64,000 bases of DNA, from contig QPMI01000395.1 of the NCBI GenBank assembly GCA_004431415.1, positions 186,001-250,000 on the forward strand. Reading direction: 5' to 3'. Source of the DNA: Cyanophora paradoxa CCMP329 (Eukaryota; Plantae; Glaucophyta). Shown one piece after another: positions 5,499-63,730 of the stretch; the first letter of the stretch is position 1; every line of letters begins with the position of its first letter. The notes under the pieces were generated by a model. That model was not told the DNA's origin. It made no database searches and saw only the letters and a list, made by a program, of their open reading frames with translations. A program made the position numbers and the translations under genes.

Positions 5499-5663
5499 AT
5501 GGACGCCCCGGTATGGGACGCGCACCCGATCCCTAATTACTTCCTAATCAACCCGGACGACCCCGGATTAAAGTGCATTTGGCTTCTCCATATCCTAAGG
5601 CGACAGCTCCTTCAATTAGAGCGCAAACCAAGAAAAAGAACGCACGATAAGATAGACGACTAA
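5499..5663 (+). CDS. Small hypothetical protein (54 aa, MDAPVWDAHP...)
   Basis: ATG..TAA ORF below the track threshold, converging on the pPolB stop codon. No recognisable motif. Confidence 0.3.
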   Translation: MDAPVWDAHPIPNYFLINPDDPGLKCIWLLHILRRQLLQLERKPRKRTHDKIDD

Positions 5664-8600
5664 CAGCCGAATGGAAGGCTATGTATGCCGTCGCCTGATA
5701 TGCAGCGCTTGCTATCGAATTGGGTCAGCGCTATCCGCTTGCTCTCCAAATCATATAAGTGGTGGCATCGCCGTTGCTTGTTTACTACTGTTACTGTTTT
5801 TGTGATCCCGTCAAATAGGCAGCGCTTAAAGTCGTCGAAATGCACCTCTTTCGAGGCTGTCCCGCTCATTTTTACCTTGTCGTAGCTCTCGGTGCGGAAA
5901 GCATATAGCTTCGGTCGCAGCCCCACATACTCCACTATCTTGACGTCGGGCATCTCATTTTTATATTTACCGGGAACCATCCGGTTCTCGGGACTATTAG
6001 GGCAATCTAAATAAGGGCTGATCGCTCGCATGCCCGCTTCCAGATCCGCGCTCTCTATATACAGACAGAACGAGTCGGTATCGTGGAACAGCAGCTGAGC
6101 TTGCGAGAAAGTCGGTCGGATCACGTCGTAAAAGAAGCTATAATTATGCAGCTTCGCGGCATCCAGCACATAAGCGCCAATCGCAACCGGTTTATCGAGT
6201 TTTACGTGTTTACTATACATTTCGAATGCAACCGCAGTCTCGTTTAATACATTCGTCGCTTTTACCAGTGGGCTCGCCGCATATTTCTTAAACAGCTTCG
6301 TGCTATTCGCGATCTTTACCACTGAGCGCCCGCGACACGATTCCAGGCATTTACCGTAAATAGCATTGTTCATCAATTTAAAAAAGTCGCTCTCGAATTT
6401 ATTCCGGGCTTCCTTTCGCAGTTTCGTGTTCAGATCTATATAGGGCTTCATAAATGCAGCGGTTGCAAACGAGAGCACACGGTGGATCTTAGTAACTACG
6501 ATCCCCTTTTTTACCATATAGAGCAGCATCGGCTGAGAGACCACGTAATTATATTTCGGGGTAAACGAGGCGATCAGCTTCGGATCTTTACTGAGCTTCT
6601 CGCCGCTAATCTCCAAAAGCCCACGCTGATATTTGCCGAGCATGTCCGCAGTAATTACCTCTTTACTCACGATCAGCGGGAAATCGCGATGGTCAGCCTT
6701 TAAATAGTCCGGATAGGCAAGGTCGACCTCTATAAATGCACTCCGCCCTACGACCTCGGTAAAAGCTGTGCTTGTGTCGTCCCAGCGATAGTCCCCGACC
6801 GGTAAAGGCTGACTGAGCGCATAGCCATATAGATTATTCGCATCCAATAGCACTATATGTTTATTCTCGCTATTAGCCTCGGCATATCGTGTGGGCATGG
6901 TCGCAAAGCCGCCCCTAATTGCCCGCTCAATAAATTCGTATTGATCCGCATCGCTGATCTGTTCTATCGCGACCCTCGTATGCTTTAACATCGCGTCCCA
7001 CGATAGTCCCGGTGCGCTCACATAATGAGTCGGATCCAGACCGTATTGCTCATGGGCGAGCATACTGAATTTACCGAATTTTACCATGAGATCATTAACA
7101 TCGGACGCCTGAAAATCCATGAAATTCGAGGCGTCTATAAACTTGTAAAGTCCCACTGTAAAGAGAGATACTCATCGAAATTCTTACTTAGGATCTCGAC
7201 CCGCAGCTTGTCGTCTTGCTGTGCGATTTTCCTGAATATAGCATGCCCGCACTCGTCCATCCGATCAATGACCACGGCTACTTTCGTTTGCTTTGAGATC
7301 CTCCTATGTAAATTGCATTTTCGGCAAGCTTTCCCTATATAATCGCCGCTTTGGTGACAGTGATCGCGCACAGGGAAGTTTTCGTGGGTAAACCGCTGAT
7401 TGCATATATAGCAGTGTTTGGTCAGCTTATAGGCTTGCTTTTGCGCCTCTGTGAGCGGGATCATAGGTGTGTTGGTAAATAGGGTATTAAGCATCTCGCG
7501 ACACAGATCCCCTAACGTGGTAAACATCTGTCCCAGCGGATCCACGCCCTCGAATTCGTGATTTTCAACATGAGAGCCCATAACAACATTAAGTGCCACC
7601 GACTTTACCTCTCGCTTGGTTCGATTTGGTTCATTAGGAACCGGCACCGACTCCATCTCTACTTTGCAGTAGCAGACAGTGGGCAGCCACACCATTTTCC
7701 TTAGGTGTTGCAGTCCGAAAGTAATAAAGCTTCCGGGTTCCGGGCATTTACCTTTACTCAGCCGCCAATCGATACAGCGATTAGAGTCGGTGTGGCTATC
7801 GAGTTTCTCCTGTGATCTAAACCGGGACAAACAGGTTTCGCAATAGAAAATGCGCCCATCGTTTGCTTTATCAAAGGTGGTCTTTAAGAGGCGGCTCAGT
7901 GACATTATCGTAATATAGTGACCCTGTCCGTTTGCGTCCTCGATCAGCAGCAGGTTTACCTTCGATTTACGACGCGGATTACTTGACATGTGCAGTGGGT
8001 AAAAGGTTTGGGTCGCATTGTCGGCGCCATATATATTAATTGACAGCTCGGGATTATTGTCCTCGAAACGATCTATTAATGCAGCATCGCAAGCCACCGG
8101 GAAATTAATGCCTGAGAAGTCCAGCTCAGTCATCCACCGCCTATATTGGAACGGATCATTACGTTTGTGTCTGTTTATGTCGTTTCTGTGCAGCCATGCG
8201 AGGATAGCGTAATTAAAGCAGTCGTGACCATCGATATTCTTAATATTTACTGTGGCTCGCTTTAATCCAATCCATTCGGGGGTCTCAATGTAGCAACCGC
8301 CCATCGGCGCATATGACAAAACGGCGACATGTAGCTTATCTAATTTACTTAGCCGGTAGCTGTCGACCTGTATCATCTGTTCATTCATTTGCTGAGCTAC
8401 ACCCACTAACTCAGTGAGAATATTGCGCGACCTTGTGATTACGAAATAATCGCTGTATATGTGTTTGGTGATAAAAACGTTAGGATCACTCACTTTTACG
8501 TATCGGCAGATGAAAGTAAGTCGCACCTTAATAGCTTTCAGTTCATCCAGCCTTTCTTTCAGCCGCCCAGGCAGATTTGCAGCGATGGTAGTGAGAAATT

Positions 8601-10171: not shown

Positions 10172-12586
10172 TTACGCTTCTATATCATCCTCATCTTCGT
10201 CTTCGAACTGTGTCTTGGCGATCTTAGTGAGCCCCTTATAAACTCGCTTCGCCTTTCCTTTAATTGTTGTGACAGTAGATTCAATCTTGAATGTTTCATA
10301 CACTTTATTACTGATAGAGCGAGTGGTAACCTTCTTTTTGATATCGTAGTTTCGCATCATATCCGCGCAAGCTTTGAATACCTCATCGCAGGCAACATGG
10401 GCACCCTTTTCCTCTGACAGCTTATAGTTTTCGCGCAGATAGGAACCCACTTTATCGCTGTCGTCGAGATATTTGGCGCTATGCTCGATGACCGATTGCG
10501 GCGGGTTTTTCAGGATCTCTTTTACTTTGCCAGTGGCGAGCATATCGATGAGAATCTGAATATTTGCTCGCTTGTAAACATTTTTCTCGTCGCCCTCAAA
10601 CATTTCCATAAGGGTTTCATCCGCTTTCTTCTCTCCGGCTTTGGGATTAGGTGAGTAAACAGAGCGGAATGGGATCGATCTGAACCGGCGCTTTATAGCA
10701 TTGTCGGGCAAATCGATTTCCAAATTATTATTGCACAGGATCACCATGGTAAACCGTGGTTTGAAATCAATAGGATCCCTGAAAAGTCCACGTGCTGTGC
10801 AGAGATCGCCACCTGTTAGTTCCTTCATCATCCCACACAGAATCTTATCGCCATCGTTGGGTTCGTTTGAGTGGGTGAGCCGGACACCTTGCTTATTAGC
10901 AAGCTCGGGAATCGGGCTATTCGCTTTGTGGGGCTGTGTGAGCAAAGTAATGCTAATCGGGCGACCATAATCGCCGAATGTCTCTTGCATAAACGTTTCA
11001 ATCACACTCTTTCCATTAGCACCGACGCCTGTGAACAGATAGAACGTTTGCAGGTCGGTTTTACCTGTGAGTGCATATGCATAGAGGCTGATCAGGTAAT
11101 TGTAGAGTTCCATATCTCCGCCACAGATATCCAAATAAATGTCTTTCAGTCTTTTAACCTTCTCCTGATCCACTTCCTCGCTATAATCAAAGCCGACAGT
11201 CTTGCTCACCATATCTTCCATCGTCCCCTTGCGGAAAGTCATATTATTTAGATCAAACACGCCATTGGTAAACCCCACAATATTGGGAACTGTGTCCAGA
11301 GTCGCCATAAAGTCATCGTCTTGCAGCTGTGTGATAATATGCGGTTCCAGCGACTTTTGATACGGTGTATTCTGAATCCTCTTGTGAATTGCCAGCAACA
11401 TATGGGCGCTTTTCTCAGCCTTTTCCTTCACAAGATCATCTCCACTTGCACTAACAGCATTGGAAAGATGATATCCCGCCCTCTTAAAGAACCACTGTGC
11501 CACATGCTCGGGGATCTTAGAGAGTATCGACTTGTCCGTTTTGTCATATTTCCAGATACCATTTTTGGGGTTAAGGTTAAACCAGACATCATTTGAATAT
11601 TTTGTGGTCGCTTTCAGGATCTTGGCGCAGATGATTGCAACAGGATAATGGGCACCTTCAACTGAAACGGTCTTGTCAATGAGAGTGTTAATTTCTAAAT
11701 GGTGTTTCTCTTCCTCGGTCAGCTCTATGTTAACCGAGAACTCTTTCGGCTCGCAGTTCTCGCTATAACTCTTCACAATATACTCATTATACTTGCCATC
11801 TCGCTTTTTCTTCACCCACCAGTTATTGGAATCGTGGGATTCATCGCAGCAGGGACACAGGAACCCCTTGTTAGCCGAATTAAAGTCAAAGCCCTCATCG
11901 CGGCGTGCATAGATGTTTGGGAATAGGAACCCCATGCCACACAGCCCGGCAATAATAGCAGCTTCGGTATTATCCTTGCTCGAATTTCCCGCTTTCGGCT
12001 GTGGATTATTGGCATGCTTGTAATCGTAGTTCTCAATAATCCATTTACGAAAAGCGTCGGAGGGCTCGTTAAACTTGCACGACGATGCCCACGGCTTAAT
12101 TACCCAGGTCTTATTAGGGCTTGGACATACATTGAGAAGTCCCGAAGTGCCAGTGCCAGTGATGGTTTTGAGGTCGACCTTCTTGTATTCCTTAAAAGCC
12201 GGCGCGCTATCTGTGATTTTCAGCTTATCGAACTCATCAGGGCGTCGAAAGAATACATGGTAGCCCTTTCGAGTCTTTTCGAGCGGCTGATGGGCATCGA
12301 AATCATCGGGAAACATCTCAACGAATTTCTGATACGTTTCCTCATCGTCGAAATCAACGACCATCATCGAATTCGACAGCAGAATGCCCCAATTAGTGAA
12401 CTCGTTGGAAGCAAAGGCTTCGTCGTATCTTCCCCAGTTCCAAACACCGCCTTTATGGGTGTAGGCGGGCTTTTTAACCTCGTCTTTCATGGGAATAATC
12501 GTGTTTTTCGACAAGGTCTCATCGCCACGCAGCCAATCAGCGAGCTCTTGGAGTAAAGTCTTTTGTTTCAACGTCATCTTCGCCAT
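10172..12586 (-). CDS. PrimPol (AEP) primase fused to D5-like SF3 helicase
   Basis: PrimPol motifs NWGILL..MVVDFDD and EKTRKGYHVFF. Zn-binding CPCC..H..C. D5_N-like VGFTNGVFDL. Walker A GVGANGKS, Walker B HSNE, MKELTGGD...ARGLF and motif C ILCNN. C-terminal winged-helix-like region. Confidence 0.93.
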   Translation of the reverse strand: MAKMTLKQKTLLQELADWLRGDETLSKNTIIPMKDEVKKPAYTHKGGVWNWGRYDEAFASNEFTNWGILLSNSMMVVDFDDEETYQKFVEMFPDDFDAHQPLEKTRKGYHVFFRRPDEFDKLKITDSAPAFKEYKKVDLKTITGTGTSGLLNVCPSPNKTWVIKPWASSCKFNEPSDAFRKWIIENYDYKHANNPQPKAGNSSKDNTEAAIIAGLCGMGFLFPNIYARRDEGFDFNSANKGFLCPCCDESHDSNNWWVKKKRDGKYNEYIVKSYSENCEPKEFSVNIELTEEEKHHLEINTLIDKTVSVEGAHYPVAIICAKILKATTKYSNDVWFNLNPKNGIWKYDKTDKSILSKIPEHVAQWFFKRAGYHLSNAVSASGDDLVKEKAEKSAHMLLAIHKRIQNTPYQKSLEPHIITQLQDDDFMATLDTVPNIVGFTNGVFDLNNMTFRKGTMEDMVSKTVGFDYSEEVDQEKVKRLKDIYLDICGGDMELYNYLISLYAYALTGKTDLQTFYLFTGVGANGKSVIETFMQETFGDYGRPISITLLTQPHKANSPIPELANKQGVRLTHSNEPNDGDKILCGMMKELTGGDLCTARGLFRDPIDFKPRFTMVILCNNNLEIDLPDNAIKRRFRSIPFRSVYSPNPKAGEKKADETLMEMFEGDEKNVYKRANIQILIDMLATGKVKEILKNPPQSVIEHSAKYLDDSDKVGSYLRENYKLSEEKGAHVACDEVFKACADMMRNYDIKKKVTTRSISNKVYETFKIESTVTTIKGKAKRVYKGLTKIAKTQFEDEDEDDIEA

Positions 12587-14450: not shown

Positions 14451-15362
14451 TCAAAATTTACCCAATTTGTTCGCAAATTTTGGGCGGCGCTTTTCTTGGT
14501 ATGCCAGCAATAGATTGGGGTCTTTAAGTAGGTCGGCTTCGATTATTCTTTTGGTGGATCGCTTTAAGGTGGCGACGTTTCCACTCACAGGTTTCGTTAT
14601 ATCGGTGGTTTGGGGTTGGTCGCCATTTACCTCTGTGGAGCTCTGTTTTACCGGCTGTTTACCAGCGGGCTTTATCTCTTCCACCGCTTTTTTAAAGAAC
14701 CGCTTGAATTTATATTCGTCAGGCACCGGATCAGCCTTGCCCACAGAGAATTCCAGGCTATATTTCGAGTTGTCAATGCAGATAACCTGATAGCTGTGAC
14801 TGTATTCGTTCATCACCTTCTCAAACCAATGCTTTTCGTATGGATTAAACTCGTCCTCAGCACTCTCCATCTCTTTTCTGTTGGGCAGCGAGAATAGAAA
14901 GATATATTCGGAGTTAACCCTAAGTGTCGGCGAAATCTTAGTGAGTTTTTGTGACAGAATCCACACAGATATGAATAAATGGCGCCCCGACGTGAATAGC
15001 TGATTTAATATAGGTTCACCTCTTCCTGACATCGAAAGACTTGGATTGTCAATGAAATCATCGAGTATGATTAACAGGTTACCGACTTTCTCCTTTTTCT
15101 TGATTCGCTCCTTGCGTTTCTGTATTATATTGTCGATCAGCTTATGATCGAAATCCTCATACAAATACGATGTGACATTGTCATATTGATGGTTCCAGAT
15201 CGTGGAAGCGAATATCATCACCGAATCTATCTTGTCCTCGTTGTGGTAAAGCAGGTATTTTAAGAATACTGACTTACCTACTCCCTTTTTTCCGACAGCA
15301 AGTAAACGGCAAGGGAATGAAAGACTTGCCGGGTCAAACTCACTCAGATCTTGTATATCCAT
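14451..15362 (-). CDS. A32-like (FtsK/HerA) genome packaging ATPase
   Basis: Walker A GKKGVGKS, Walker B LLIILDD, GRH arginine finger, WILSQK and LRVNSEY. Likely start is ATG 15362 (MDIQD). Confidence 0.94.
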   Translation of the reverse strand: MDIQDLSEFDPASLSFPCRLLAVGKKGVGKSVFLKYLLYHNEDKIDSVMIFASTIWNHQYDNVTSYLYEDFDHKLIDNIIQKRKERIKKKEKVGNLLIILDDFIDNPSLSMSGRGEPILNQLFTSGRHLFISVWILSQKLTKISPTLRVNSEYIFLFSLPNRKEMESAEDEFNPYEKHWFEKVMNEYSHSYQVICIDNSKYSLEFSVGKADPVPDEYKFKRFFKKAVEEIKPAGKQPVKQSSTEVNGDQPQTTDITKPVSGNVATLKRSTKRIIEADLLKDPNLLLAYQEKRRPKFANKLGKF

Positions 15363-15411
15363 TTCCCTTATTAGAAAGATATAAAAATTACGAAACGCCA
15401 CAGCCCTCTAT

Positions 15412-50585: not shown

Positions 50586-53500
50586 TCAGGCGGCGGTGAA
50601 GGAGAGCTCGAGGATGTCCTCGCGGAGCCACGCGGGCTGACCCGCGTCCCCCGCCACCTCCGCGCAGTGGCCCGCCAGCGCCCCCGCGTCACCCGCCGCC
50701 CACCTGCCCCAGCGAAGTGAGCGGCGGGGTGGGATGGGAGGGGGAGGAGGATAGGGGGGGTACAGGGCGACGGCGACGCCGTAGAGGGCGCGGGCCCTGA
50801 GGTCGGGGGGTAGGGGGCCCTCCAGGAGGCGGCGGAGCCCCGCCTCCGCTCCGGAGGGGTCCGCTCCCGCGCTGCGCCGCCCCCTTGAGAACGGGAAGCG
50901 GCGGGGGGTACGGCTCAAGCTAAGGCTTGCCGACCTTTGTGTGAGGCGTTCGATCTGGCCGGCGAGCGTGTTCGCGCCTTCTTGGGCCGAGGCCGGGGCC
51001 GAGGCCGGGGCCGGGGGGGAAAGCTCCAGAGAGCGAAGGGAGACGGCGAGGGCTGCGGCGACGTCGCCGACGTCGCCTTGCAGCGCGGGGAACTGGGGCA
51101 GCACGAAGCGGTGGAAGGGGGCGCCAGGGAGGTCGGCGGCGCAGGGGCAGCCGCAGGGCGGGGCGGCGGCGGGCTCGAGGCGGCGGGCGCGGGGCCACCA
51201 GAGGGGGTGCCGGGAGGGGTCGGCGTCGAGGGCGAGGGCTCCCAGGAGGGCGGCGAAGACCTCCGAGGGCTCCTGGGAGCCGGGGCCGGGGCCGGGGAGG
51301 CCCGGGGCGAGGCGGGCGAGGGCGCGGGCCTGGGCGGCCTTCGAGGCGAGCACGCGCCGGACCGCGTCGTGGAGCTGCCCGACCTGAAGGAAAGCTTAAG
51401 TGAGGAAGCAAGGAAGGAAGGCGACCTAAGGAAAGTTTAGGTACGGAAGTTATGTGGAGCTGCCCGATCTAAGGAAAGTTTAGGTACGGAAGTTAGGAAG
51501 GAAAGTCTAAGGAAAGGTAGTAAGGAAAGTCTAAGGAAGGAAGGAAGGAAGTAAGGCAGCAAGAGAGCGAGGAAAAGAGCGAGGGGGCGGACGGAGGCGG
51601 CGGGGAGGGCGGCAAAGGCGTGGAGGGCGGCGGCGGCGGCGAGGGCCGCCTCCCCGAGCCACGCGAGGCGCAGGCCCGCCGCCGAGCCGCTCCCAAAGAG
51701 CGCCTGCGGGGGGCGGGTGAGCCGTCCGCGGCGCCGGCCTCGCTGGATCTAGAGCTCTAATTCAAGGCTTTCTGAAGCCTTTTACGGCTTCTTGAAACTT
51801 TCTGCGTGGATGGCGCACGGTGGCGAGGAGGCGCTCGTCCGAGAAGGCGTAGCCGAGGGCGCCCTGCACCTCCGACAGCAGCCGCCGCGCCTGCGACGGG
51901 GCGACCCGCGGCGGCGAGGCCGGCACGACTGCGAAGCTCGTCAGGGCCGAAAGGAGTCGTCGGGGCGGGGCGGGGCGCACCGCTGGAGATGACGGAGCGG
52001 GTGAGGTCCTCCCCCGCGAAGACGTGCCGCGCGACGAAGGCGCGCAGCGCCCCAGGCCCGTACTCCAGCGCCACCGCCGCTGCGGAGGCGAGGCTAGGCT
52101 CGGCCGGGGCCGCACGAAAGGGGGGGGTACGCGCGCGGACCGAGGAGGGCCTCGACGGCGTCCGAGACGAGGTTGGGGGCCTGCCCGGGCTGCAGGTGGT
52201 CCTGCGCCGGTCCGCCGTCAGATGATAACTCTAGAAGCGTCTAGATCCGAAGGAAGAGCATGACATGTTTAGAAGAAGATGAAGGCATTAAGGCATCAGA
52301 AGAAGCTTAAGACAATATATTAAGAAGATGCATTAAGGCATCAGAAGAAGCTTAAGACAATATATTAAGAAGATCTAGAAGATGAAGGCGTTCGGGTCTG
52401 GGTCGAGGGCGCACGTTGCGGAGGACGGCGTGGGCGACGGGGAGCGGGGCGGCGCCCGGGGCCGGCGGGGCCGGGGCCTGCGCGCCCCCGACCGCCTGCA
52501 GGTACTCGTTCGACGTCAGGTCCCCGAACCTGACCATAATCAGATCAGACCAGGTCAGATCAGATCGGATCATATCGATCTGATCTGGCTCACTTCTGCT
52601 GGAGGTCGCGGGGGAGGGCCGCCTTGTTGGCGTCGAGGAGGGCCCAGCGGACGCAGAGGGCGAGCAGAGCGTCTCCCACCTGCGAGAGGGAGCCCGAGGC
52701 GGCTCAGGCGTGGCGGGGAGATATATACGGCCTAGGGCGGCTAGGGCTAGAGAGAGTCATCTATCTGTCTCTCTGTCTCCGACCTGCTCGAGCCGCTCGT
52801 TGCTGCCGGCCTCGCCGCCCGTCGCCGACGAGTGCGTGAGCGCCTCCGCCACGAGCGCCGGCGGGCGCGCGGGGTCCAGCTCCGCCCCCAGGTCCTCCGC
52901 GAGGCGGGCAAGGAGCGCCCCGCGCGCCACGGCGCGCCGCAGGTCCCCGAAGGCGCGGAAGGCAGTCGCCAGCGCGTCCCGCATGCGGCCTGGAGGATTG
53001 TAAGAAGGAGCAGGAGCTGAGGAGGAGGAGAACGCGCGCCCGTGACGCCCGTCTCGGCGGCGCAGTGCTCCGGGGCCAGCAGCGCCCCGCCCTCCGTGAC
53101 CAGCAGCGGCTGCCGGCGGGCGAGGAGCCGGGGCATGCCGCCGCCCTCCGCCTCGTACTTCTCCGCCAGCGCCACGAAGCGGCTGGGGTGGCACGGCTGG
53201 AAGAAGGGCACGGCGTCCTCCGTCGTCTTCTGCGAGACCTCCACCACCTGCCGAGGAATGAAATTACAAGGTATCGGCAGTGCAGGATTGCAAGTAGAGA
53301 AAGTACGCTGTAGTAGAAGCGGGCGCGGCCGGCGCCGTGGAGCCCGGCCTCGTCGGCCCGCGGGCGCCGCACGACGGCGTCCGTCAGGAGCGCCTCCACC
53401 TCGCGCCGCTCGCCCCCCGAGAGCTTCGCCTTAGGAGAGGGAGGCTTAGAAAGAGGAGAAAGAAGGGCTTAAGCTTAGCGTAAGCGTTAAGCTTAAGCTT

Positions 53501-54300
53501 AAGCTTAAGCTTAGCTTAAGCGTTAAGCTTAAGCTTAAGCTTAAGCTTAAGAAGCTTAAGAAGGGCGGGGCCGTGCGAACGAAGACGAGGCGAGAGGCGA
53601 GGAGGCCCTCCGGGGCGCGGGGCGCCAGCAGCCGGCGGGAGAGGTCCTCCGAGAGGTCCAGGGCGGCCGCGGAGCCGTCCGCCAGGCGGCACTCGCACGC
53701 CGGCGGCTCCCCGGCGCCGGCGCCCTCGCCCGCCTCGTCCATGACGAAGCCGGGGTAGAAGAGGAGGGGGCCCTCGGCGGCCATGTACGCGGGGGGCGCG
53801 GGGAGGGGCCCGTCCGCGCCGCAGAGGCCGTTGAATCGCTGGAGCCGCTCGCGCTGCGCCGCGCTGAGCGCCTGCGGTCGCGATCGCGATCGATCGCGAG
53901 AGATTCAACCCGACGAATCCGAAAGAGGGAGGGGGCGAGGGGGGGCGCACCAGCACGCCGCACTCGACGGCCGCGAGCGAGGAGAAGCGGCGGTAGGCGG
54001 AGGCGGCGGCGGCCGGGCGCGGGGCCAGCGGGCTGGGCTTGAAGGCCTCGACGTGGGCGTCGCGCAGGGGCAGGGCGAGGCGCCCGCCCGGCGGCAGCAG
54101 CGGCGTCCTCGAGGCGACGTAGAGCCCGGCGAAGCGGCGGGGGCCCAGGTGCGCCGGGTGCGGGGCCTGCCCGGGCCGGGGCGTCAGAAGGCGTGGCGCG
54201 GCGTCGACAAGGGCGACTCGCTCGCCTGCGGCAGGTCGGAGGAGAAGTGGAGGAATGTCAGAAAGAACTGCTGCGGGGGGTCCTCGGTCCTCAGCAGGGC
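50586..54300 (-). other. Dicer-like module: platform, PAZ, connector, RNase IIIa (intact), RNase IIIb (degenerate)
   Basis: IIIa: EALTHSS..SNERLEQ|VGDALL and SDAVEALLG. IIIb: LGYAFSDERLL, LRLAWLGEAAL and SEVFAALLGAL. PAZ-like LTDAVVRRP..FYY..QPLL..LAPEHC. Platform-like LSAAQRERLQRFNGLC. Confidence 0.82.
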
Positions 54301-57300
54301 CGCCAGGCTGCGCGCGGGACTGCTCGGCGGGCGCGAAAGGGTGCGAATCGAAGGGGGGGGGGGGGGGGGGGGGGGGCGCACAGCTCCGGCTCGTCGTCGT
54401 CTTCGACGTCCTCGATCTCCTCGAGGCGCGCCGGCTCGACCTCGCGGCTGCGCCCGGCCCCCGGCACCCGCTGCCCGCGCGGCGTCAGCCGCGTCTCGCT
54501 GGCGCGCGGGGGTGGGCGCACGATGGTGTGGGAGGCGCGTCCCAGGCCCGACCGGTTGCCCGCCGTCTGCGCCCCTCGCACCGCCGCCTCGAAGACCGCC
54601 GGCGCCGAGCCGCCGCCGCCGGCGCCCCGGCCGGCGGCCGCGGCCGCCGGTGGCGGGGCTCCTCGGTAGAGCATGGCGGAGAGGCGGCCGCCGGGCCCGT
54701 AGTCGACGCCGGCTGGCGGCGCCGGGCCCAGCGGCGCGCGCAGGGCCGCGCCGCCCCATCCCGCCGACGCGTTCTCGCGGGGGCCGGCGGCCTGCGGCGA
54801 TTGCTGCGGCGCCGGCGCCGAAGGAGGGCCCGTGCGGGCGCGGCCGGCGTGCATCTCGCGCGTGAAGGGAGTCTCAGCGACCACGAAATTCGAGGGCGCT
54901 GCGGTGCGAGGCGCTGCGGCGCAGGATGCGTGAGCGGCGCGGGCCCGGGCGCGTGGTTGTGCGGTAAAAGAAGGGCACCGGCCGATTCAGATGCAGGCTC
55001 GGGAAACGCGGCTGCTGGCTGCGCGGGCGCTGCGCAAGAGTCGGACGATGCACGGTGAGCCCCTTTCCCAGATCACGGCGCTCACCAGGCGGCAACTCCG
55101 GCGTCGGCGCAGCGGGCGAAGCGGGAGGGGGCAGCGCGGGCCGCGGCCTCGCGCCTCGCTGCGGCTGCGATGGCGCCGTCTCCTGGATCACCAGCAGCCT
55201 GGCCGGAAGTAAACACTCGAACTCAAAGGAAGTGTAGCAGAGTAGGACTCACGACCTGGCGTGCGCGTCTTCAAGACCGGCGACTTCGACGGGCGGCGCG
55301 TACGCCGCGGGCTGAGGCTGCTGCGCGTGTCCAGGCCTGCGCGGACGGGGAATCGACGGGAATCGAGGGGCAGGGACCTCCGAGAGCTCGAGCAAGGCGC
55401 ACCAGGGCAGCGGCTGGTGCTGAGGGTGCCACTGGGGCGGGGGCGGGGCGTGGTAGTGTTGCGGCTGGACTGGAGGGCCCTGCGGGTACTGCAGGCCTGC
55501 GCAAGAGCCTGAGAAGCGTTCTGGGCGAGGCGGGAGCGCGTTCGAACCCGGGAACATCGGCGGGGCGGGCGGCGCGCGGTCCACCTCTGCGATGAAGCCG
55601 CAGCCGCTCTGCCGGTCGTACTGGACGAGGCGCGTCCCCCCGCCGCCGGCCGTCGGGCCCCACGCCAGCACGCGGTCGGCCGGAAGGAAGCCGGCGGCCG
55701 TCGGGACCAGCGGCACCTGGACGGGGGCGGCGCCGCCGGCGGGGACGTGGGGCCAGGGTACGCCGGCGGGCAGGGTGGCCGCCGCGGTCGCGCCATGGAA
55801 GAGAGGGGCGGGAAGCGGCAGCGGCTGGGCGAGCGGTGCGGGCGGGGCTGGAGCCGGCGGGGCCGGCGCGGGCGCCGGGGGCCGCGAGGCAGTCATCGGG
55901 GGCCTGTAGGGCGGCGGGACCCTAACGGGCTGGGGTACCGCGCGAGCCGGGGCTGCGGAGGCGGGATCCGGGGCGGAAGCGGGCGGGGGGTACGCGTTTG
56001 CCGGCGGAGCGGGGGGTAGTGGCGGGTTAGGGGAGGGCGCGGGAGGGGGAGGAGCCGGGGCCGGGGCGTAGGGCGCGTGGAGCGCGGGAGGCGGATTGAA
56101 TGGTGCATGGCCATGGGGGGCCGGCGGGGCAGGGACCGCCTGGTCCAGGAGGAGGGAAGGGGGCTGCAGGTGCAGGAGCTGCGAGGGGGGCGGCCCGTAG
56201 GGGCTCCATGAAGACGGAAGCGGAGCCGGCGCGGCGGAGGGCGGGGCCGCGGCAAGCGGCCGCGGGGCCGGGGGAGGGGGCGGCGGAGCGGGGGGGTACG
56301 AGCCCTCGAAGAGGCGGGCGACGGAGGGCGCCAAGGGCTCGGGCGGTCGCTGTGGCTGTAGCTGTACCCCCGGCGCGAGCTCGCCCTCGTGCTGCTGTAC
56401 CCCCGGGGCGGGCTCCCCCTCGCTGCTGCTGTCCTCGGGCCCCGCCTCGCCGGCCTGCGGCGGCTGCGGCTGCTGGGCCTGCTGCGGCCGCCCAGCGACC
56501 CTCCGGTGCGGCCGCTGAGGCGCCTCCGCCTCCTCGCGCCACTGGTTTGGCTGCCCGCCGAACGGGTGCGGCAGCGGCTCGAGCAGCGCCTCCTCCACCG
56601 GCGCGAAGTCCGCCAGCCTCGGGTCCTGCCCTCGCCCTCAGCTAAGCTCTCCAATGCCTCTTTAGAAGGCGGCGCCGCCGCACCTTGGCGAGGGCCGCGT
56701 CGACGAGGTCGCGGGCGGGGCCCTCGTGGAGGACCCAGAAGTCGCGGGGCGCGAGGACCGCGAAGCGTGGGGCCGCCCGCAGCGGGCGCTGCTTCCCCAG
56801 CACGTCGTCCACGTCCCCCGCCGCCTTCTCCGTCTGCATACGCTTCGAAGTCAACGTCTTTCTAATCAGGATAGACGAGGGAGCGAGGCGCGCGCACCTG
56901 GCCCCACCACGCGACCCCGACCTGCACGTCCCTGCGCCGCGCGGCCATCAGCGGATCGGAGACGGGGCGGGCGGAGACGACAAGGCCGCGCGCCCCAAGG
57001 AGCCCAGGATGTGGAAGGTCTTGAGGGCGCGCTCGGCCACGTCGCTGTTGGAGACGGCGCCGGCGTCGGGGCAGTAGATCACCTGCGCGGGCCGACTTGA
57101 GCGCTTTCATGAGAGATCGAGTTCGCGCGGGGCGCGCCAGCCTCGTCCCGAGGCGCTGGATGCAGTCGCGGAGCAGCAGCTCCGAGCTCGCGAAGTCGCC
57201 CCCCGAGCCGCTGCCGGGAGGGGGAAAGGAATGAGACGAGGCTTGATCTAGAAAGACGAAGATCTAGGTCTTGAGCGCACATCCCCGCGCCGATGACGGC

Positions 57301-59331
57301 GAGCCCCGTGTTCGCGCAGACGACCAGAGGCTGCGATGCGCGGTTGGGCGATGCGAATGTAGGACGGGAGGGCTCCTAGCGACCTTCAGGCCGCCCTCGG
57401 TGAGGAGGAGGGCGTGGCGCGTCGTTCGCGCCGGGTCCTTCGGGCGCCACACGAATAGCGGGATCTGCCCGCTCCGCAGCTGCGCGCGCCCCGGTCGCGT
57501 TTATCTTTCCCGGGAAAGTGGGGCGGGGCGCGGGCTTCGGACCTGGTGGAAGGGCGTGCGGCGGGTGCTCCCGGGGGTCCAGTACCGGCAGATGCCGAAG
57601 CCCGGACGGGTCTTGACGATCGCTGGCGCAGAGGGACTCAGCCAGAGGGGAGGAAAGAGCTCGAGCTCAGCTCGGGCCGAGCAGGCGCGCGCGCGCGTAC
57701 CCATGGTGATGCGCTCGTCGATGTCGACGGCGGGCACGAAGAGGCCCGGCGGCCCCGCCAGCAGCGACTCCGGCACGTGGTTCTCGACGCTGGGGTCGCA
57801 CTCGCGGACCAGGAGCTCGTTCCCGGCGGCGTCCGCCGGCTTGACGCCGGGGAGGCGGACGTCCGGCGGCGTCTCCCGGAACTTGTCCTTCTTGAACTGG
57901 CCGCAAGCGGGCTTAGTCGCGCGGCGGAGAAGGTCGAGCGCGAACGGACGCGGCCGCTGCGCGCACGCGGTAGGGGTCCCAGGTGCAGACGTACTCGCCG
58001 CCGACGATGCGCTCCAGGAGCCGCCTGCAGACGCCGCGCGCCTTGAGCTCGTTGCGCTCGTCGATCTGGAGCCTCCCGGACATCGCCAGCGTCGGCAGGA
58101 TGCGGTGGACGTACTGCCGGGGTGAAGGCGGAGGTCAGGCCGGGCGGGCTGGCCGGCCGGCGCGCGGCGCTTAGAGGCTGCCGGGACCCACCTGGTGGTG
58201 CCGGGTGTCCTCGTCTAGCATATCTTCGGGGTTCGGGCTGGAGATGAGCTGGAAGTGCAGCTCGCCTGCGGGAAAGGAACCTCAGCGGCTCCGAGGCGCG
58301 CGCCGAGGAGCGCTGCGCGGGGCCGGCGCGCGCACCGTGGACGTTTCTGGAGAAGACGGGCACGGCGCCCGCCCGCCCCTCGAGCGCGGCCAGGTCCGGC
58401 ACGTCGCCCCAGCGCCGCCAGAGGTCCCGCATATCGCTCCGGCAGACCTCCGAGAGCTGCGGCGTCACTGGCGGGCCCGTCGGCCGCGCCGCAGCGGTCA
58501 GCGAGCACCGGCGCGGACTGCAGAGGTAGGGCGGCGGCGCACGAGAGGTCGAGAGGCTGCGGCAATCGCGGTCGCGGCAGGTTAGGATGGCGCGTGGGCT
58601 GTCTCCGAGACAGACGATGACGCGATACTCCAGCGTCTGCGCGCCGGCGTATACGTACGCGTCGTACGTCGCGCCGCATGAAAGCGATGTCGGGGCGCCG
58701 CGTTCTAGATCTCGGACCTTGTGCTCGCGCCCCCTCAGGAAGCATCGCGCGTGCGGCAGAGGGTAGAAGTTGATGAAGAACTGTCGCAGTGTCAGCGCAA
58801 GCGCATGCGTCGCGCCCAGATCTAGAGGTGCATTGCACGCGCACCTTCTTCTCCTTGAAGACGGCGCTGCAGCTGCGGAACTGCACGTTGTCGCGCTCGT
58901 TGTGGGCGTCCAAGGCCAGCCCGTCCAGCTGCCGGATCGCCGCGATGGCGTCCGCCGCGTTGTTCGCCAGATTCCACTGCGGGCGATGCGATGTGAGAAA
59001 TAAGCATACAGGGCCGCGTGCGATTGCGTGCGATTGCGTGCGCGAGGCACAGAACTCTAGATCTCCGGTCATCCATGGTCCGCACCAGGTTGCGAATGAA
59101 CCACTCGGGCAGCGTAGACGAGAGGCATATGCGTGGCTCGCTGATCTCGCTGGACTCTTCCTCCGCCGCGGCGGGCGCGGCTGCGGCCGGTTGCGGCTCG
59201 AAGAACGAGCTGTAATCGACCGGCGGCGGCGGCGGCGGCGGCGCATACGCGACATCGAGCAGCTCCGCTCTGACGTATTCGACGACATCCTCGACGCGGC
59301 GCCGAGGCTCCCGCCGACGCGGCTGCGGCAT
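50586..59331 (-). CDS. Predicted TOPRIM(primase-like)-Dicer fusion protein (multi-exon); alternatively two adjacent genes split near 54854..55250
   Basis: TOPRIM exons at 56684..57482, Pro-rich ORF at 55249..56598 and Dicer region at 50586..54884. In-frame GT-AG introns 55199..55252, 55030..55085 and 54914..54978 connect them, and there is no intergenic-like gap. Confidence 0.6.
53467..53560. repeat. Intronic (AAGCTT/GCTTA) tandem repeat within the Dicer-like region
   Basis: Tandem GCTTAA units visible in the sequence. Confidence 0.8.
56684..57900 (-). other. TOPRIM primase-like domain resembling cyanobacterial plasmid/primase proteins (DUF3854/CyRepA1-like N-terminus)
   Basis: VRLPGV, GLFVPAVDIDERITMG, LRSGQIPLFVWRP, LLLTEGGLK|P, VIGAG, VIYCPDAGAVSNSDV and VAWWGQ|TEKAAGDVDD, in the order expected for this family (family recognised from recall). 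Confidence 0.68.
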
Positions 59332-59386
59332 CTTTGGGGGTACAGTCAACTCAAACTTCAGTCCAAACTTCGGTCGAGTGGGAATC
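59332..59386. promoter_or_regulatory. Putative bidirectional promoter between the TOPRIM-Dicer and PIWI genes
   Basis: Only 55 bp separate the divergent predicted ATGs at 59331 (-) and 59387 (+). It contains a duplicated CAAACTTC. Confidence 0.45.
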
Positions 59387-62300
59387 ATGACAGGAGCGGG
59401 CAAGCGCCCGTCCGGGAAGTCGGCAATGCGTGCGCGACCGCCATCCGCGCCGTCGCAACCCCCGGCGGACGGGAGCTCAGCGGACGGGACGGCTTTCGTG
59501 TCCACTTTCCAGTTTGTCGACGTCCAGCAGCCGAGCGCCGATCCGCCCTCCCGGACGATCGCACAGTACGACATCGAGTTTTACGATTCAGACCGGGTGC
59601 GCTCGCGCGATGTGCGAGCGCGCGATGCGCGATATCGATGCCCATCGCATGCATGCGCATGGACGGATGCGCAGGAGCCGATCCTGAGCAGGAGAGTCTG
59701 CCGTGAACTTTTCAACAGCCTGCGGCAAGAAGGAAAGCTGCCCGGTGAGCTCGAACCGCTCTCCTTTCCGGAATAGCTAAGCATCGATATCGGACGCCGG
59801 GCTCGAACGCCTAGCTATGGCTATAGGCGCCTGGCCTGCTTGCCTATGGTCATGAGCTCTGTCCCGCCTGGCGGCTGCGCGTGCGCTGACCTCCTTGCTG
59901 CCGCTTGCAGAGGCCTCTGGTTTCGATGGCGGCAGCATCGTCTTCGTCAAGGGCGGCATTCCGAACGTGGAGGGCGATCCGACGCTGATTCGATTCAAAG
60001 CGGCCGTGCGGATCGGCGGCAGGCTCAGCGAGGGCGTCGTCGCGCTGACGCCGACCGCCGTTTTCGAATTCGATCCCAAAGATGAGCGCGCGAGGGCCGC
60101 ATGGGTCATCGTCCTGCGGGAGGTCAGTTTCTTTCTCGGCCGTTGAGCGCTAGCCAGCTAGGCTGCCGCTGCAGCTGGCTCAAGCTCGATGCGGCTCTCA
60201 GATGCAGCGAGCTGGCGGGCTGCACCCGCGGGGCAGGAGTGGCGTGTTCCCTGACACGGTCTCTGGCAACCAGAAGATCACGTTCAAAGACGCCTCCGGC
60301 CGGGACCGAGAAGCAGTGCGCCCCGGGCCCTTCACATTCTCGTTCCGCCGCCCTCGGCTCACGTGTACGGCATCTGCAGATCGTGATAACGGGCATCAAC
60401 ACGGTCCCGGGCCTGGTCTGCACGGCGGACGGTGGCGTGACGACGGGCTACGCGGCGGACATCGTGAGCCAGGTCGTGCGCGTGGAGACGATCCTGGACA
60501 CGCTGCTGGAGCTGCTCGAGGAGCACAGGGCGCGGAGGAGCGAGCGGCTAGTGGAGGCGTACGCTCGCCCCGAGTTCCAGAAGGTCGTGAGGCGAGAGCT
60601 GGAGGGCAAGACCTTCCTCACAGAGTGCGCGGGCGCCGTCGATCCCGCCCCCGCTCGCTCCGAGCTCGAGCTCGAGGGGCAGGCACGAGCGGGGCGGGGA
60701 CAAGCGGCGCACGATCGCGCGCATCGACTTCGCGCGGCGCCTTCGCGACACGTTCGACGAGGACCTGCCCGGCGGGGGCACGCGGGCCGTCAGCCACGAA
60801 GAGTACTTCCGCCGGGTCCGCGCCCGCCGCGGCTTCCCTGTTTCTAGATCTGTTTCTTTGTTTTTGAAGTGGTGCCGCTGATCTCTCGCGATCGCGAGCA
60901 GAAGCACCCCGACCTGGAGCTCGAGGGAGAGGACGACTCGCCCATCCTCGTCTACGAGCTTCCCCCTCGGTCCGCGCTGATCGATCGCTTGGCGCGGCTG
61001 CGCCGTGCTGATGCGCGCGCAGGACGCCAGGCGAGCGGCCGCGGGAGTGCTTCCTCCCGCCGAGCCTGGCCCGCGTGACGGGCATGTGCGCGCCGCCCCG
61101 ATTCGCTCGCCCCCCACGATCGCCGTCTGAACTGGCTTTCCAGCTACGACGGCGAGACGGAGCTGCGGCAGAAGGTCGTCGCGCTCTCCAAGGTCCGACC
61201 CGCCGAGCTGCTTCAGCTGCTGCTGCTGCTGCGGCTCGCGATCGCCGCCTCTTCTCCGAACGTTCTCACCGCGCCCCTCCCGCAGATGAAGCCGGAGGAG
61301 CGGGCGGTCAAGTGCGTCGAGTTCAGCAACAGGATCGCCGACGGCGGCGAGCGGCCCCTGGCCCCCGACTCGGCCGTCCGCAGGGCGGTCCGCCCTCGCC
61401 CTCGCCCCGCCCCGCCCCGCCCCGCCCCGCCCCGCCCAACGCCGCCTGATGGCGAGGGTGTCGGCAGCCGGCGGAGGCGTGGGGCCTGCGGCCCGTGCGG
61501 TCGCTCATGCAGGCGCAGCACGACGTGCTCCAGGTCGGCCCGGGCGTCTGCCCCGCGCGCCCCCGCTCGATTCGAACCGGATCCGCGCGCGCTCGCGCAG
61601 CCGCCGCGCATCCTCTCGGGCGGCAACACGAGCAACGACGTCGATCCCAAGACCGGTGCTCTTCCCTCCGCTCTGCTTTTCTGCCATCGCTTCGTCAGAT
61701 CAAAGCTGACTCTGCCCCAGGCTACTTCTCCTCGGCGGCGAAGAACCCGGTCTACGACCCCGTACCCCTGCTCGACTGGCTCATCGTGCACCCGCCCCCG
61801 GCGCCGGCGGACCCCCGGCGGCCCTCCTCCTCCCGTGGCCATGGCCACGGCTCCGAGGGGCCCGAGCTGGCCGACCGCCTCGCCACCCAGCTGAAGAAGG
61901 CGGCGCGGGCGGCCGGCGTCGACCTCTCCGAGCCGCGCGTCGCGCCGGCGAATCAACCCTCGCTCGCTGCGCTGCAGCGCTCCGGGGCCGTCACGGGCGC
62001 GGCGTACCTCGCTGCCCTCCGCGAGAACCTCCGGCCCTCCACACAGATCGGTGCGGCTTCATTATAACCTGTCCGCCTCTCAGAGTCTTCTTCTCACGCT
62101 TTTCAGTGTTCTTCATCCTGCCGAAGAATGCGAAGGACAGCATGTACGAGGACATCAAGGGCGGGACGATCCCGACCTGCGGGGCCGTCACGCAGTGCGT
62201 CAAGGCGGAGAGCCTGGTGCGGCCCTTCTTGCCTGCCTTCCCTCTTTTCGGTGCCGCCCCTGACGGAGGGCGCAGAGCAACCCCGGGAAGATCCTGCAGG

Positions 62301-63223
62301 TCGTCCAGGGCATCATCCGGCAGGCGCGCCGGCGCCCGGGAGATCGAAGCCGCTCGGGCCGGGCGAGCGGGGGCGGTTGATCGAGATCGGGTCGCCTGCG
62401 CAGGTCGTCTCCAAGTGCGGGGGCGAGGCTTGGCGCGCAGACCCCACGCGCACCATCGCCCCGCGCGGCCTCGGTGCGGCACTTTACTGAGCCTTAAAGC
62501 AGCTTTTAAGCTTTAAAGCGGTTTTAAAATAGCAGTTATTCAAACTTCGACTCGGACTTTACGCAGGGGACCTGTGCGTCGGGCTGGCGACGTGCCGCTC
62601 GACACGGCAGCCGGGGCACATCGTGGTCGCCGCCGTCTGCGTCGACGCCCGCACCTACAAGCAGTGCGCGCCCGCTCGCGCGCGCGCGGCCTCCATCCAG
62701 CCCGCCGCCGACGGCGCGCGCGCGTCGCAGGCTTGCGTCGGACGTGCGGAGCGTGCCGGCGGACGCGGACCGCGATCGGCGGTCGGAGGCGGCGGCGGTG
62801 GGCGAAGTCGTCGCCGCCGTCCTCTCCGACGCGGCGCTCAAGGCCGGCGCCCCGGCCGCCTCCGCCTCCGCCTCGGTGCGGGCCTTTATCTTCCGGCGGG
62901 ACGTGGACCGCCGCCGGCTGCGCGACGTCGAGCTGCCCGCCGTCCGCGCCGCCGTCGGGCGGGAGCTCCCGGGAGCCCTCCTGGGGTACGCCGTCTCCGG
63001 CAAGGCCAAGCAGCGCGCGTACTTCGTGCCGGAGGGCGCCAGCGCCGCCGACCCCCGCAACATCCGGAACCCCCCCGGTGCGGGCCTGCACGAACCCACG
63101 TACCCCCTCCCCTGCGGTCCGAATTCGCGTACCCCCCGCAGCGGGCCTCTGCGTCACGGGGGCGGGGGCCCCCGCCGACCCCGACGCCGCCTCGAGCTTC
63201 CTCGTCACCCACAGGTGGACTGT

Positions 63224-63256
<33 letters not shown>

Positions 63257-63730
63257 CCCTTCGCCGCTCACCCTCCCCAGCTCGCTGCCCGAGTCGAAGG
63301 GAACGCCCATCCTCTCCCAGTACACAGTGCGCGCGCGCGCCCGCGCGCCGCGCCCTCCCCCTTCTCAATCCATCTATCTATCCATCTTTCTCCCGTCGCC
63401 GAGGCCGACCGGACCCACCCGCCCGCCGCAGATCCTGCAGGACGAAACAGGCCTCGAGAAGAAGGCGTGGGCGCAGCTGACCCAGAACCTCTGCTGCTGC
63501 GTGCGCCGCGCCCCGCCACGCCACGCCATGCCGCGCCTCGCGGCTGACCGGCAGCTGTACCCGGGCCGCTCACCCACCGCCCTGCGACGCAGTACCCCAA
63601 CCAGCCGAAGGCAATCAACGAGCCCGGGCCGCTGCGGATGGCGCAGCGGGAGGCCGAGCAGGTCGCCTCCTGCGTCGCCTCGGACGCCCCGCCCCACCCC
63701 AACCTCCTCGAGACCCCCTTTTACCTCTAG
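59387..63730 (+). CDS. PIWI-clade Argonaute protein, predicted slicer-inactive (spliced)
   Basis: N domain (IAQYDIEF, FDGGSI). PAZ (IARIDF...SHEEYFR...PILVY...FLPPSLARVTG). MID pocket (MYEDIK, VTQCVK, VVSKCGG). PIWI (NPPGLCV, SFLVTH, KGT...YTILQD, LTQNLCC, YPNQP.AINEP). Terminal PFYL-stop. Confidence 0.85.

Follow-up and report, generated by a model that had tools for sequence, protein, structure and literature searches.

A nuclear gene pair of Cyanophora paradoxa: a primase-Dicer-like fusion head-to-head with a putative non-slicing Argonaute

Organization and transcription of the locus

The window (64,000 nucleotides from the nuclear genome of Cyanophora paradoxa, a glaucophyte) contains two divergently oriented genes in one block, mostly as a first-pass annotation had placed their features. 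The primase-Dicer-like fusion gene, designated gene A (coding part 50586-59331, minus strand, approximately 38 exons, 1999 aa), is defined by mapping of a public model at 100% identity and by spliced RNA-like contigs, and the Argonaute-family gene, designated gene B (59387-63730, plus strand, 22 exons, 910 aa), by an open frame with GT/GC-AG splice sites and by motifs read by eye. The 55-bp distance previously noted between two divergent ATGs is borne out by the mapped start of gene A (59331-59329, minus strand) and the modelled start of gene B (59387, plus strand); the spacer located by these start codons (59332-59386) is presumed to be a shared bidirectional promoter and 5' untranslated region. 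One RNA contig extends about 30 nt upstream of the gene A start codon, contig ends not being equivalent to transcript starts. Since the start codons are so close, shared regulation is likely, and the common spacer suggests that the two genes may be co-regulated. The fusion and the linkage are seen in the one genome examined. A polinton-like element is located 22 kb away, its link to the gene pair being one of pure proximity.

The sole match to an exon piece of the window among 1.84 billion proteins is tig00020510_g9828.t1 (Cyanophora paradoxa, 1999 aa), the public model of gene A, which maps to the window in 38 exon segments from 59331 to 50589 at 100% identity. About 15 listed minus-strand spliced junctions are carried by RNA-like contigs from two studies, which excludes chance as the source of this gene structure. 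The introns seen in these contigs are of the GT/GC-AG type and 50-150 nt long, and splicing at the junctions leaves the frame open all the way from the linker into the RNase IIIa domain. Some exon joins of the gene models were set by eye, and the Dicer side was fitted to the length of an RNA contig. Gene A is GC-rich, with a host-like GC content, and intron-rich; it is transcribed, and the gene pair is compact.

The two halves of the gene A protein are joined by a proline-rich, low-complexity linker of about 600 aa, of which a single 1.08-kb exon (55546-56625, minus strand) forms one open frame that RNA contigs enter from both sides, reaching to about 56270 from upstream and to about 56000 from downstream. 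None of the RNA contigs bridges 56000-56270, and DNA contigs break there too, as would be expected if adjacent primase-like and Dicer-like genes on the same strand had been wrongly merged; such an artefact is nevertheless highly improbable, because both sets of contigs end within one open exon, in the same frame and in a low-complexity stretch, and the public annotation predicts a single protein. Low-complexity stretches are typical break points of assemblies. With spliced RNA contigs from both sides ending inside the same exon, the primase-Dicer fusion is very likely real and expressed as one transcript.

A primase domain related to cyanobacterial plasmid replication proteins

The N-terminal half of gene A encodes a putative DnaG-type primase catalytic core with a TOPRIM fold (residues ~339-545; 56705-57770, minus strand), which is interrupted by seven introns and the exons of which sum to 572 nt, equal to the spacing in an RNA contig. 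When plasmids were searched with tblastn, 73 records matched this domain (E down to 2e-12, 31-38% identity), nearly all of them cyanobacterial and many annotated as CyRepA1-family replication proteins; with phmmer, the domain matched CyRepA-like proteins at 57-90 bits, with 59 of the 61 family members matched by residues 330-560, the best of them at 90 bits. The bacterial homologues carry DnaB-like, D5/P4-like or UL9-like helicases, the classical primase-helicase layout. The corresponding cyanobacterial domain has been named DUF3854 and described as "related to Toprim", with its function listed as unknown (PMC10079941). The same region gave nothing significant in a tblastn search of phages. 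From these sequence relationships, the domain appears to have been acquired from the replication gene of a cyanobacterial plasmid, encoding a CyRepA-like primase-helicase, and to have been filled with host introns since. In a phylogenetic tree its branch is long, at 2.09 changes per site, and no donor lineage within the cyanobacteria is singled out.

Sequence models of Toprim, DnaG and DUF3854 (Pfam, NCBIfam and PHROGs, E up to 1) do not match the gene A protein, and the DUF3854 profile touches only 2 of 46 family members. Searches of the PDB by sequence found no match to the primase region or to a profile of its family, nor did word-index protein searches, within their length limits, with the stop-free N-terminal piece and residues 100-620. 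The TOPRIM-like domain proposed by the first-pass annotation is borne out despite this lack of profile matches, both by the homology described above and by the predicted fold. AlphaFold2, given the CyRepA family as the alignment, modelled the domain with a pLDDT of 82.7 and a pTM of 0.82 (a single-sequence prediction of residues 100-620 was uninformative, with a pLDDT of 35), and the eight best Foldseek matches of the model (E 2e-4, probability 1.0) are all catalytic cores of DnaG, so that the structural check proposed for the middle region did find a TOPRIM fold. With VIA-align, the predicted domain aligned to DnaG (residues ~115-407, which take in both its N-terminal subdomain and its TOPRIM core) with Z of 9.6-11.5 over ~197 of 231 residues and an rmsd of ~4 A, and to T7 gp4 and Twinkle with Z of about 9; model residues 67-225 aligned to the TOPRIM domains of gyrase and topoisomerase with Z of 7-8.

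All residues invariant in the family are kept in the gene A protein, including Y375/W376, E416, K420, D467, W500, Q502, D509 and D511. E416, the conserved TOPRIM glutamate after the first strand, is in a column at least 90% conserved across 46 family members. The DxD motif of TOPRIM domains is absent, a single aspartate (D467) being found in the gene A protein and in the cyanobacterial consensus alike, and the acidic residues D509 and D511 are located downstream of it. Closer to the N-terminus, a Cys/His pattern (C-x6-H-x20-C-x4-C, residues ~136-178; 58544-58780, minus strand) may be a zinc-binding element, with a weak match to Pfam Herpes_UL52 (E 0.15). No CHC2 zinc ribbon was recognised in the protein, and its first 330 residues show no match to the N-termini of the bacterial proteins.

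Because every family-invariant residue is kept despite the long branch, the domain may have retained its activity. A possible alternative, though a somewhat less likely one, is that it no longer polymerises and has replaced the Dicer helicase as a module that binds single-stranded DNA or RNA or recruits other factors in the same silencing role, a case comparable to the archaeal DnaG homologue that binds RNA in the exosome. The loss of one aspartate of the DxD motif, the long branch, the lack of primase or Toprim profile matches, the weakly matched Cys/His pattern and the uninformative single-sequence fold would all fit such a module, but the single aspartate is also seen in the bacterial proteins, in which the domain is joined to a replicative helicase, and among the invariants kept from the bacterial family are residues with acidic or aromatic side chains close to where the active site is expected. 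That the primase-like part is a mere relic of a captured plasmid gene, with no role in the function of the Dicer-like protein, is very unlikely: its horizontal origin and the very long disordered linker, which suggests loosely coupled halves, are compatible with a relic, but the domain holds seven introns, has the GC content of its host, stays in an open frame and keeps all family-invariant residues, which indicates long-term selection.

The Dicer-like half and the neighbouring putative Argonaute

Where the helicase of a Dicer usually is, gene A has the primase domain. In the C-terminal half, the RNase IIIa domain (52018-52858, minus strand) possesses the signature acidic residues and is recognised by Pfam PF14622 (E 2.5e-12, the score being above the curated cut-off), PF00636 (E 4e-07) and NCBIfam RNaseIII (E 6.8e-11), whereas the RNase IIIb domain (51225-51670, minus strand) is degenerate: its weak match to PF00636 (E 0.013) covers positions 2-100 of the 102-position profile, it aligns internally to RNase IIIa, and L, A, E, E and A occupy its catalytic positions. 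The Dicer-like module is thus predicted to pair an intact RNase III domain in tandem with a degenerate one, and to have no helicase; neither a helicase nor a dsRBD family of Pfam was found in the gene A protein. Of the Dicer-type RNase III and PAZ motifs reported by the first-pass annotation, the RNase III part is upheld, and the PAZ-like stretch (53032-53429, minus strand) is a resemblance seen by eye in the spliced translation, with no match to PAZ in Pfam or in PDB sequences. PDB searches of the Dicer half with phmmer gave nothing. A Pfam ArgoL1 match (E 0.073) within the gene was rejected as spurious, being in a non-coding frame.

Gene B is modelled as 22 exons, with all introns GT/GC-AG, that form a single 910-aa frame, which opens at 59387 and ends with a stop codon at 63728-63730, and the motifs of Argonaute proteins, read by eye, occur along the model in the correct order. 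Three exons (62107-62473, plus strand) encode a predicted 5'-phosphate pocket (model residues Y592, K596, Q608 and K635, assigned by their spacing as read by eye), in which the Y-4-K-12-Q spacing agrees with that of human Ago2. The only match of a gene B exon in any tool is a weak Pfam Piwi match (E 0.099) in one of these exons (36 aa, 62109-62216), which covers profile positions 3-36 and falls at the correct start of the profile. All other exons of gene B were blank in exon-by-exon searches (Pfam, and phmmer against the PDB), Pfam searches of stop-free pieces and exact exons as single-exon queries being almost blank; the protein atlas assigned no family to the largest exon, exons having been searched singly. 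The full PIWI protein that had been proposed therefore stands as an open 910-aa model with ordered motifs, one weak Piwi match being its support from tools, and the identification of gene B as an Argonaute comes mainly from reading by eye.

In the PIWI-domain exons (62567-63730, plus strand), alignment by eye to the Ago2 motifs indicates that three of the four positions of the DEDH slicer tetrad are replaced (A662, R743 and Q883), in agreement with the earlier description of the protein as slicer-dead. Gene B thus seems to encode an Argonaute that could hold a 5'-phosphorylated guide but would be unable to slice.

A possible DNA-engaging small-RNA pair and its relatives

As a whole, the locus is best explained, tentatively and at somewhat less than even probability, as a DNA-engaging small-RNA pair with primase, single-site Dicer and non-slicing Argonaute steps. 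Both would be nuclear small-RNA genes, divergently transcribed from the 55-bp spacer. The primase module may engage single-stranded DNA, such as that of viruses, mobile elements or repeats undergoing replication or transcription, and make short RNAs on it. RNase III enzymes cut double-stranded RNA, and the product of a primase on DNA is an RNA-DNA hybrid, which calls for a further step: the RNAs might pair with transcripts complementary to them or be extended by an RNA-dependent RNA polymerase of the alga, of which four genes have been reported together with abundant small RNAs (PMC3700990). Cleavage of the resulting duplexes could then fall to the one active RNase III site, which may work as a dimer, in the Dicer-like half that the long disordered linker would tie to the primase half, and the products could be handed to the neighbouring Argonaute, which would silence without cleavage. 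In this scheme the identities of the domains, the arrangement of the genes and, short of a bridging read, the fused transcript are observed, and we infer that the primase is active, what it acts on, that its products reach the Argonaute and what is silenced.

A more specific version, which we regard as doubtful, is DNA-templated silencing in which the primase would write short 5'-triphosphate RNAs directly on single strands exposed while viral, polinton-like or transposon DNA replicates, the half-dead Dicer module would cut only the RNA strand of the duplex, at a measured length, and the non-slicing Argonaute would be loaded with DNA-derived guides. Decidedly unlikely is an arrangement in which genes A and B share a promoter region and act in unrelated pathways, the Dicer-like protein serving RNA processing or a different Argonaute, and its non-slicing neighbour taking guides made elsewhere. 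BLAST is reported to give one Dicer hit in this alga and two or more for Argonaute (PMC3700990), and the long small RNAs bound by AGO1 of Chlamydomonas are independent of the adjacent DCL1 (PMC10226591), both of which would be compatible with separate pathways; on the other side, 55 bp between the start codons makes shared regulation likely, and it is unlikely that two core genes of RNAi are neighbours by chance, the same layout having arisen or persisted in Chlamydomonas.

If the small-RNA pair functions as proposed, small-RNA biogenesis may include a step that synthesises RNA or engages DNA, and RNA silencing could in this way be linked to DNA; this bears on how DNA parasites are recognised by silencing ahead of, or even in the absence of, double-stranded RNA. 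The fusion also points to the recruitment of a bacterial plasmid replication module to eukaryotic RNAi in an early-branching alga with primary plastids, and the gene pair is amenable to testing in vitro. Dicers are known with helicase N-termini or without any, and the literature searched contained no Dicer-like enzyme joined to the catalytic core of a primase.

The DCL1 protein of Chlamydomonas reinhardtii possesses the usual helicase-type N-terminus and is not known to have a primase domain, and AGO1 of that alga differs from the Cyanophora Argonaute, which by eye lacks the slicer residues. Otherwise this archaeplastid alga provides a precedent for adjacent, divergent Dicer-like and Argonaute genes: DCL1 and AGO1 are neighbours and divergently transcribed (Casas-Mollano 2008; PMC10226591), so that the head-to-head arrangement is already known and the earlier view that linkage of RNAi genes is unusual is weakened. 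Both are divergent paralogues within their families, and have been proposed to be functionally linked and to act against molecular parasites (PMC10226591).

CyRepA1 and CyRepA2, in which DUF3854 is joined to a helicase (PMC10079941), share with gene A a homologous N-terminal domain (28-38% identity) and all of its invariant residues. They differ in that the C-terminal partner in gene A is an RNase III module instead of a helicase, and in that gene A is a nuclear, intron-rich, GC-rich gene. The predicted fold resembles those of DnaG, the T7 gp4 and T4 primases and human Twinkle (Z of 8-11.5 over ~197 of 231 residues, with the conserved glutamate), but unlike DnaG-type primases the domain has no detected similarity to sequence profiles and has one aspartate in place of DxD. 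The C-terminal half is like a canonical Dicer or plant DCL in its tandem RNase III domains and, by eye, in the PAZ-like stretch preceding them, but unlike these enzymes it has a degenerate RNase IIIb domain, an N-terminal primase domain and no helicase, recognised PAZ or dsRBD. In the QDE-1 pathway of Neurospora, RNA made on single-stranded DNA triggers RNAi, and in the WAGO/22G pathway of C. elegans, triphosphate small RNAs made by a polymerase are loaded into non-slicing Argonautes. Both are functional analogies only: the polymerases there belong to the RdRP family and are encoded by separate genes, whereas in Cyanophora paradoxa a predicted DnaG-type fold is fused to RNase III.

Structure and expression of the primase-Dicer-like gene

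The minus-strand gene corresponds to P0001, a public protein model of 1999 residues (window 59331 to 50586) that comes from EukProt (Cyanophora paradoxa tig00020510_g9828.t1), is alone in its cluster, and was the only match, at 99% identity, to an exon piece at 57543-57896 (minus strand) among 1.84 billion proteins. Between 59331 and 50589 it aligns at 100% identity in 38 exon segments. Seven runs, drawn from two studies, contain about half of the words sampled from 54600-60500, the share that spliced RNA should give; for 2012 runs the share rises to as much as 87%, which fits DNA. Contigs of four runs, three RNA-like and one of DNA, were compared with 52300-58299 (54342-54415, which overlaps a homopolymer C run, being skipped as a repeat); about 15 listed junctions, found in the RNA-like runs only, skipped 50-151 nt and, after small shifts, showed GT-AG or GC-AG boundaries in minus-strand orientation. 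The introns of this interval are very short, several have GC donors, and GTGCGC is the most frequent donor; long homopolymer C runs lie within introns of both genes of the pair (54355-54378 and approximately 63227-63259).

Joined together, the confirmed exons give a single open frame that links a proline-rich exon to the RNase III region, provided that two more introns, deduced from contig coordinates, are removed. One of these (54914-55034) is a non-canonical intron of 121 nt that is supported by RNA contigs and for which none of the equivalent shifts yields GT/GC-AG ends. P0001 and the RNA contigs disagree at a few junctions only, P0001 using other exons at 54914-55034 and 55030-55087. Seven short upstream exons, identified by eye, total 572 nt, exactly the distance that separates two anchored pieces of a single RNA contig. 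No contig bridging 56000-56270 was found in the RNA-like runs or the DNA run; contigs from both sides stop within the same open exon of 1.08 kb, in low-complexity sequence at which the DNA assembly breaks too. The primase and Dicer halves almost certainly constitute one fused gene, and a mis-fused gene model is improbable. At the other end of the gene, an RNA contig of 5158 nt runs, by coordinate arithmetic, about 1.4 kb of spliced sequence past the Dicer stop codon, downstream of 50586, which suggests either a long 3' untranslated region or overlap with the next transcript.

The Dicer half contains an RNase III domain (residues 1539-1684) that scores above the Pfam cut-off (E = 2.5e-12), with concurring evidence from NCBIfam, and in which the signature acidic residues are present on direct reading. 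A second RNase III match (residues ~1745-1828) is weak (E = 0.013) and covers the whole profile, and its five catalytic positions read as L, A, E, E, and A. The Dicer-type RNase III and PAZ motifs of the first-pass annotation are therefore upheld as to RNase III; the stretch preceding the first RNase III domain is PAZ-like by eye and drew no match from any tool. Neither a helicase nor a double-stranded RNA-binding domain was found in P0001. The two halves are joined by a proline-rich linker of approximately 600 residues, in which residues 600-1180 match no Pfam family; a short stretch within the linker exon (approximately 55575-55640, minus strand) resembles by eye the core of a cold-shock or OB-type nucleic-acid-binding motif.

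Ancestry and fold of the primase-like domain

Searches of Pfam, NCBIfam, PHROGs and PDB sequences detected no Toprim family in P0001. By language-model features, residues 380-600 are nearest to the clusters DUF3854 and Toprim_2 (scores of 0.91-0.94), and the ten best named matches all belong to one clan, a nearness that was treated as a lead only. A tblastn search with residues 395-585 matched 73 records in a collection of 72,556 plasmids, nearly all of them cyanobacterial (including Acaryochloris, Pseudanabaena, Leptolyngbya, Synechocystis, and Calothrix), with E-values down to 2e-12, 31-38% identity and up to 95% of the query aligned; many of the matched genes are annotated as "plasmid replication protein, CyRepA1 family." The same type of search with the primase region gave no significant match in a phage collection. 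With phmmer, residues 339-540 aligned with three CyRepA-like proteins (57-85 bits), and a search seeded with an Acaryochloris protein gathered 61 relatives, cyanobacterial or metagenomic, of which 59 match residues 330-560 of P0001 (up to 90 bits). The C-terminal partners of these relatives (D5_N/Pox_D5, DnaB_C/AAA_25, DUF927, or a UL9-like helicase) constitute a primase-helicase layout, and one relative has a DnaG zinc ribbon. CyRepA1 and CyRepA2 are plasmid replication initiators that combine a helicase with DUF3854, a domain described as "related to Toprim" (PMC10079941); the Pfam model of DUF3854 touches just two of 46 family members.

In an alignment of these 46 sequences, P0001 keeps every invariant or nearly invariant residue (Y375/W376, E416, K420, D467, N473, W499/W500, Q502, K505, D509, and D511), even though the branch leading to its domain is long (2.09 changes per site) and has no settled place in the tree; that the domain is a relic is accordingly among the less probable readings. 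Of the strict DxD motif, the whole family has only one aspartate. For an AlphaFold2 model built with the alignment (pLDDT 82.7, pTM 0.82), Foldseek ranks eight catalytic cores of DnaG first among PDB structures (E ~2e-4, probability 1.0), and the T4 and T7 primases next. VIA-align gives Z-scores of 9.6-11.5 against DnaG (about 197 of 231 residues, rmsd ~4 A), approximately 9 against T7 gp4 and human Twinkle, 8 against the T4 primase, and 7-8 against the TOPRIM domains of gyrase and topoisomerase (model residues 67-225). Homology, residue conservation and the modelled fold thus identify the domain, at the level of sequence and prediction, as a DnaG-type primase core that derives from cyanobacterial plasmids, and the TOPRIM-like domain noticed at first reading is borne out despite the lack of a Toprim profile match. 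The first 330 residues of P0001 have no detectable relatives; a Cys/His pattern within them scores weakly against the zinc finger of the UL52 primase (E = 0.15), a putative resemblance.

The plus-strand gene and the head-to-head arrangement

The plus-strand gene was modelled by reading frames by eye and then searching for exon boundaries with codon usage as the score. The resulting 22 exons have GT/GC-AG sites, with donors mostly of the local consensus, and form a single open frame of 910 codons from 59387 to a stop codon at 63728-63730. The predicted protein presents, by eye, Argonaute motifs in the correct order: an N-domain-like region, a PAZ-like region, a MID exon, a 5'-phosphate pocket, PIWI motifs, and a PIWI-like C-terminal end. 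The pocket residues, read by eye as Y592, K596, Q608, and K635, have a spacing that we take to match that of human Ago2. Tool support is thin: the single Pfam Piwi match (E = 0.099, profile positions 3-36) falls in the exon of 36 residues after the MID exon, and all other exon-level searches of this gene were blank. A Pfam ArgoL1 match at 56946-57035 (minus strand, E = 0.073) was dismissed as chance, its frame being non-coding in the RNA-supported model, and this counsels caution with weak exon-level matches. Judged by its sequence, the product is very probably an Argonaute-family protein; the full, slicer-dead PIWI protein proposed at first reading is in line with the open frame, the ordered motifs and the three slicer positions read by eye as A662, R743, and Q883, and its placement in the PIWI clade is putative.

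The start codon of P0001 (59331-59329) and that of the Argonaute model (59387) are separated by 55 bp, in agreement with the divergent starts first reported. An in-frame ATG upstream in the minus-strand gene (59388) overlaps the plus-strand ATG within a short palindrome (59385-59390); its use would give the coding regions a two-base overlap. By contig arithmetic, about 30 nt of the spacer next to the minus-strand start codon are covered by one RNA contig. The short gap, the overlapping ATGs and this contig indicate that the transcription units are back-to-back or overlapping. The head-to-head gene pair is real, and a pair of functionally unrelated neighbours is one of the minor alternatives.

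Genomic setting and possible function

GC content is 40-49% over window bases 1 to approximately 28,000 and 58-78% over the remainder; third-codon-position GC indicates many short coding segments, and bacterial-style open reading frames in the GC-rich part were rejected as meaningless. The gene-pair locus is nuclear DNA of the glaucophyte. The low-GC block (1-28000) is an integrated polinton-like viral element, as first reported. Its minus strand encodes a DNA polymerase B of the protein-primed type (E = 8.8e-13), a primase-helicase matching D5_N/DUF5906, and a packaging ATPase similar to Pox_A32 (E = 3.8e-10), with features at, for example, 5663-7156, 10175-12586, and 14454-15401. Approximately 22 kb (about 23 kb in the first estimate) lie between the Dicer gene's 3' end and the element. 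Its primase-helicase is separate from, and unrelated to, the primase domain of P0001, and proximity is the sole connection between the element and the gene pair.

The anatomy in the first-pass annotation is largely correct, and the function that it put forward is a proposal only. The kept invariant residues and the primase-helicase context of the bacterial relatives suggest that the domain may have polymerase activity. An active primase module would then feed the Dicer/Argonaute pair, the reading that we favour tentatively, with a substrate, a hand-over and targets that we infer; a primase-derived domain that serves only for binding is somewhat less probable and comes second.

Cyanophora has abundant exonic small RNAs and, by BLAST, one Dicer match, two Argonaute matches and four RdRP genes, in a study that mentions neither Dicer/Argonaute linkage nor a primase domain (PMC3700990). 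No description of a Dicer fused to a Toprim or primase domain was found in the searchable literature. The head-to-head layout itself is not new, because DCL1 and AGO1 of Chlamydomonas are likewise adjacent and divergently transcribed, an arrangement conserved in two sister species (PMC10226591).
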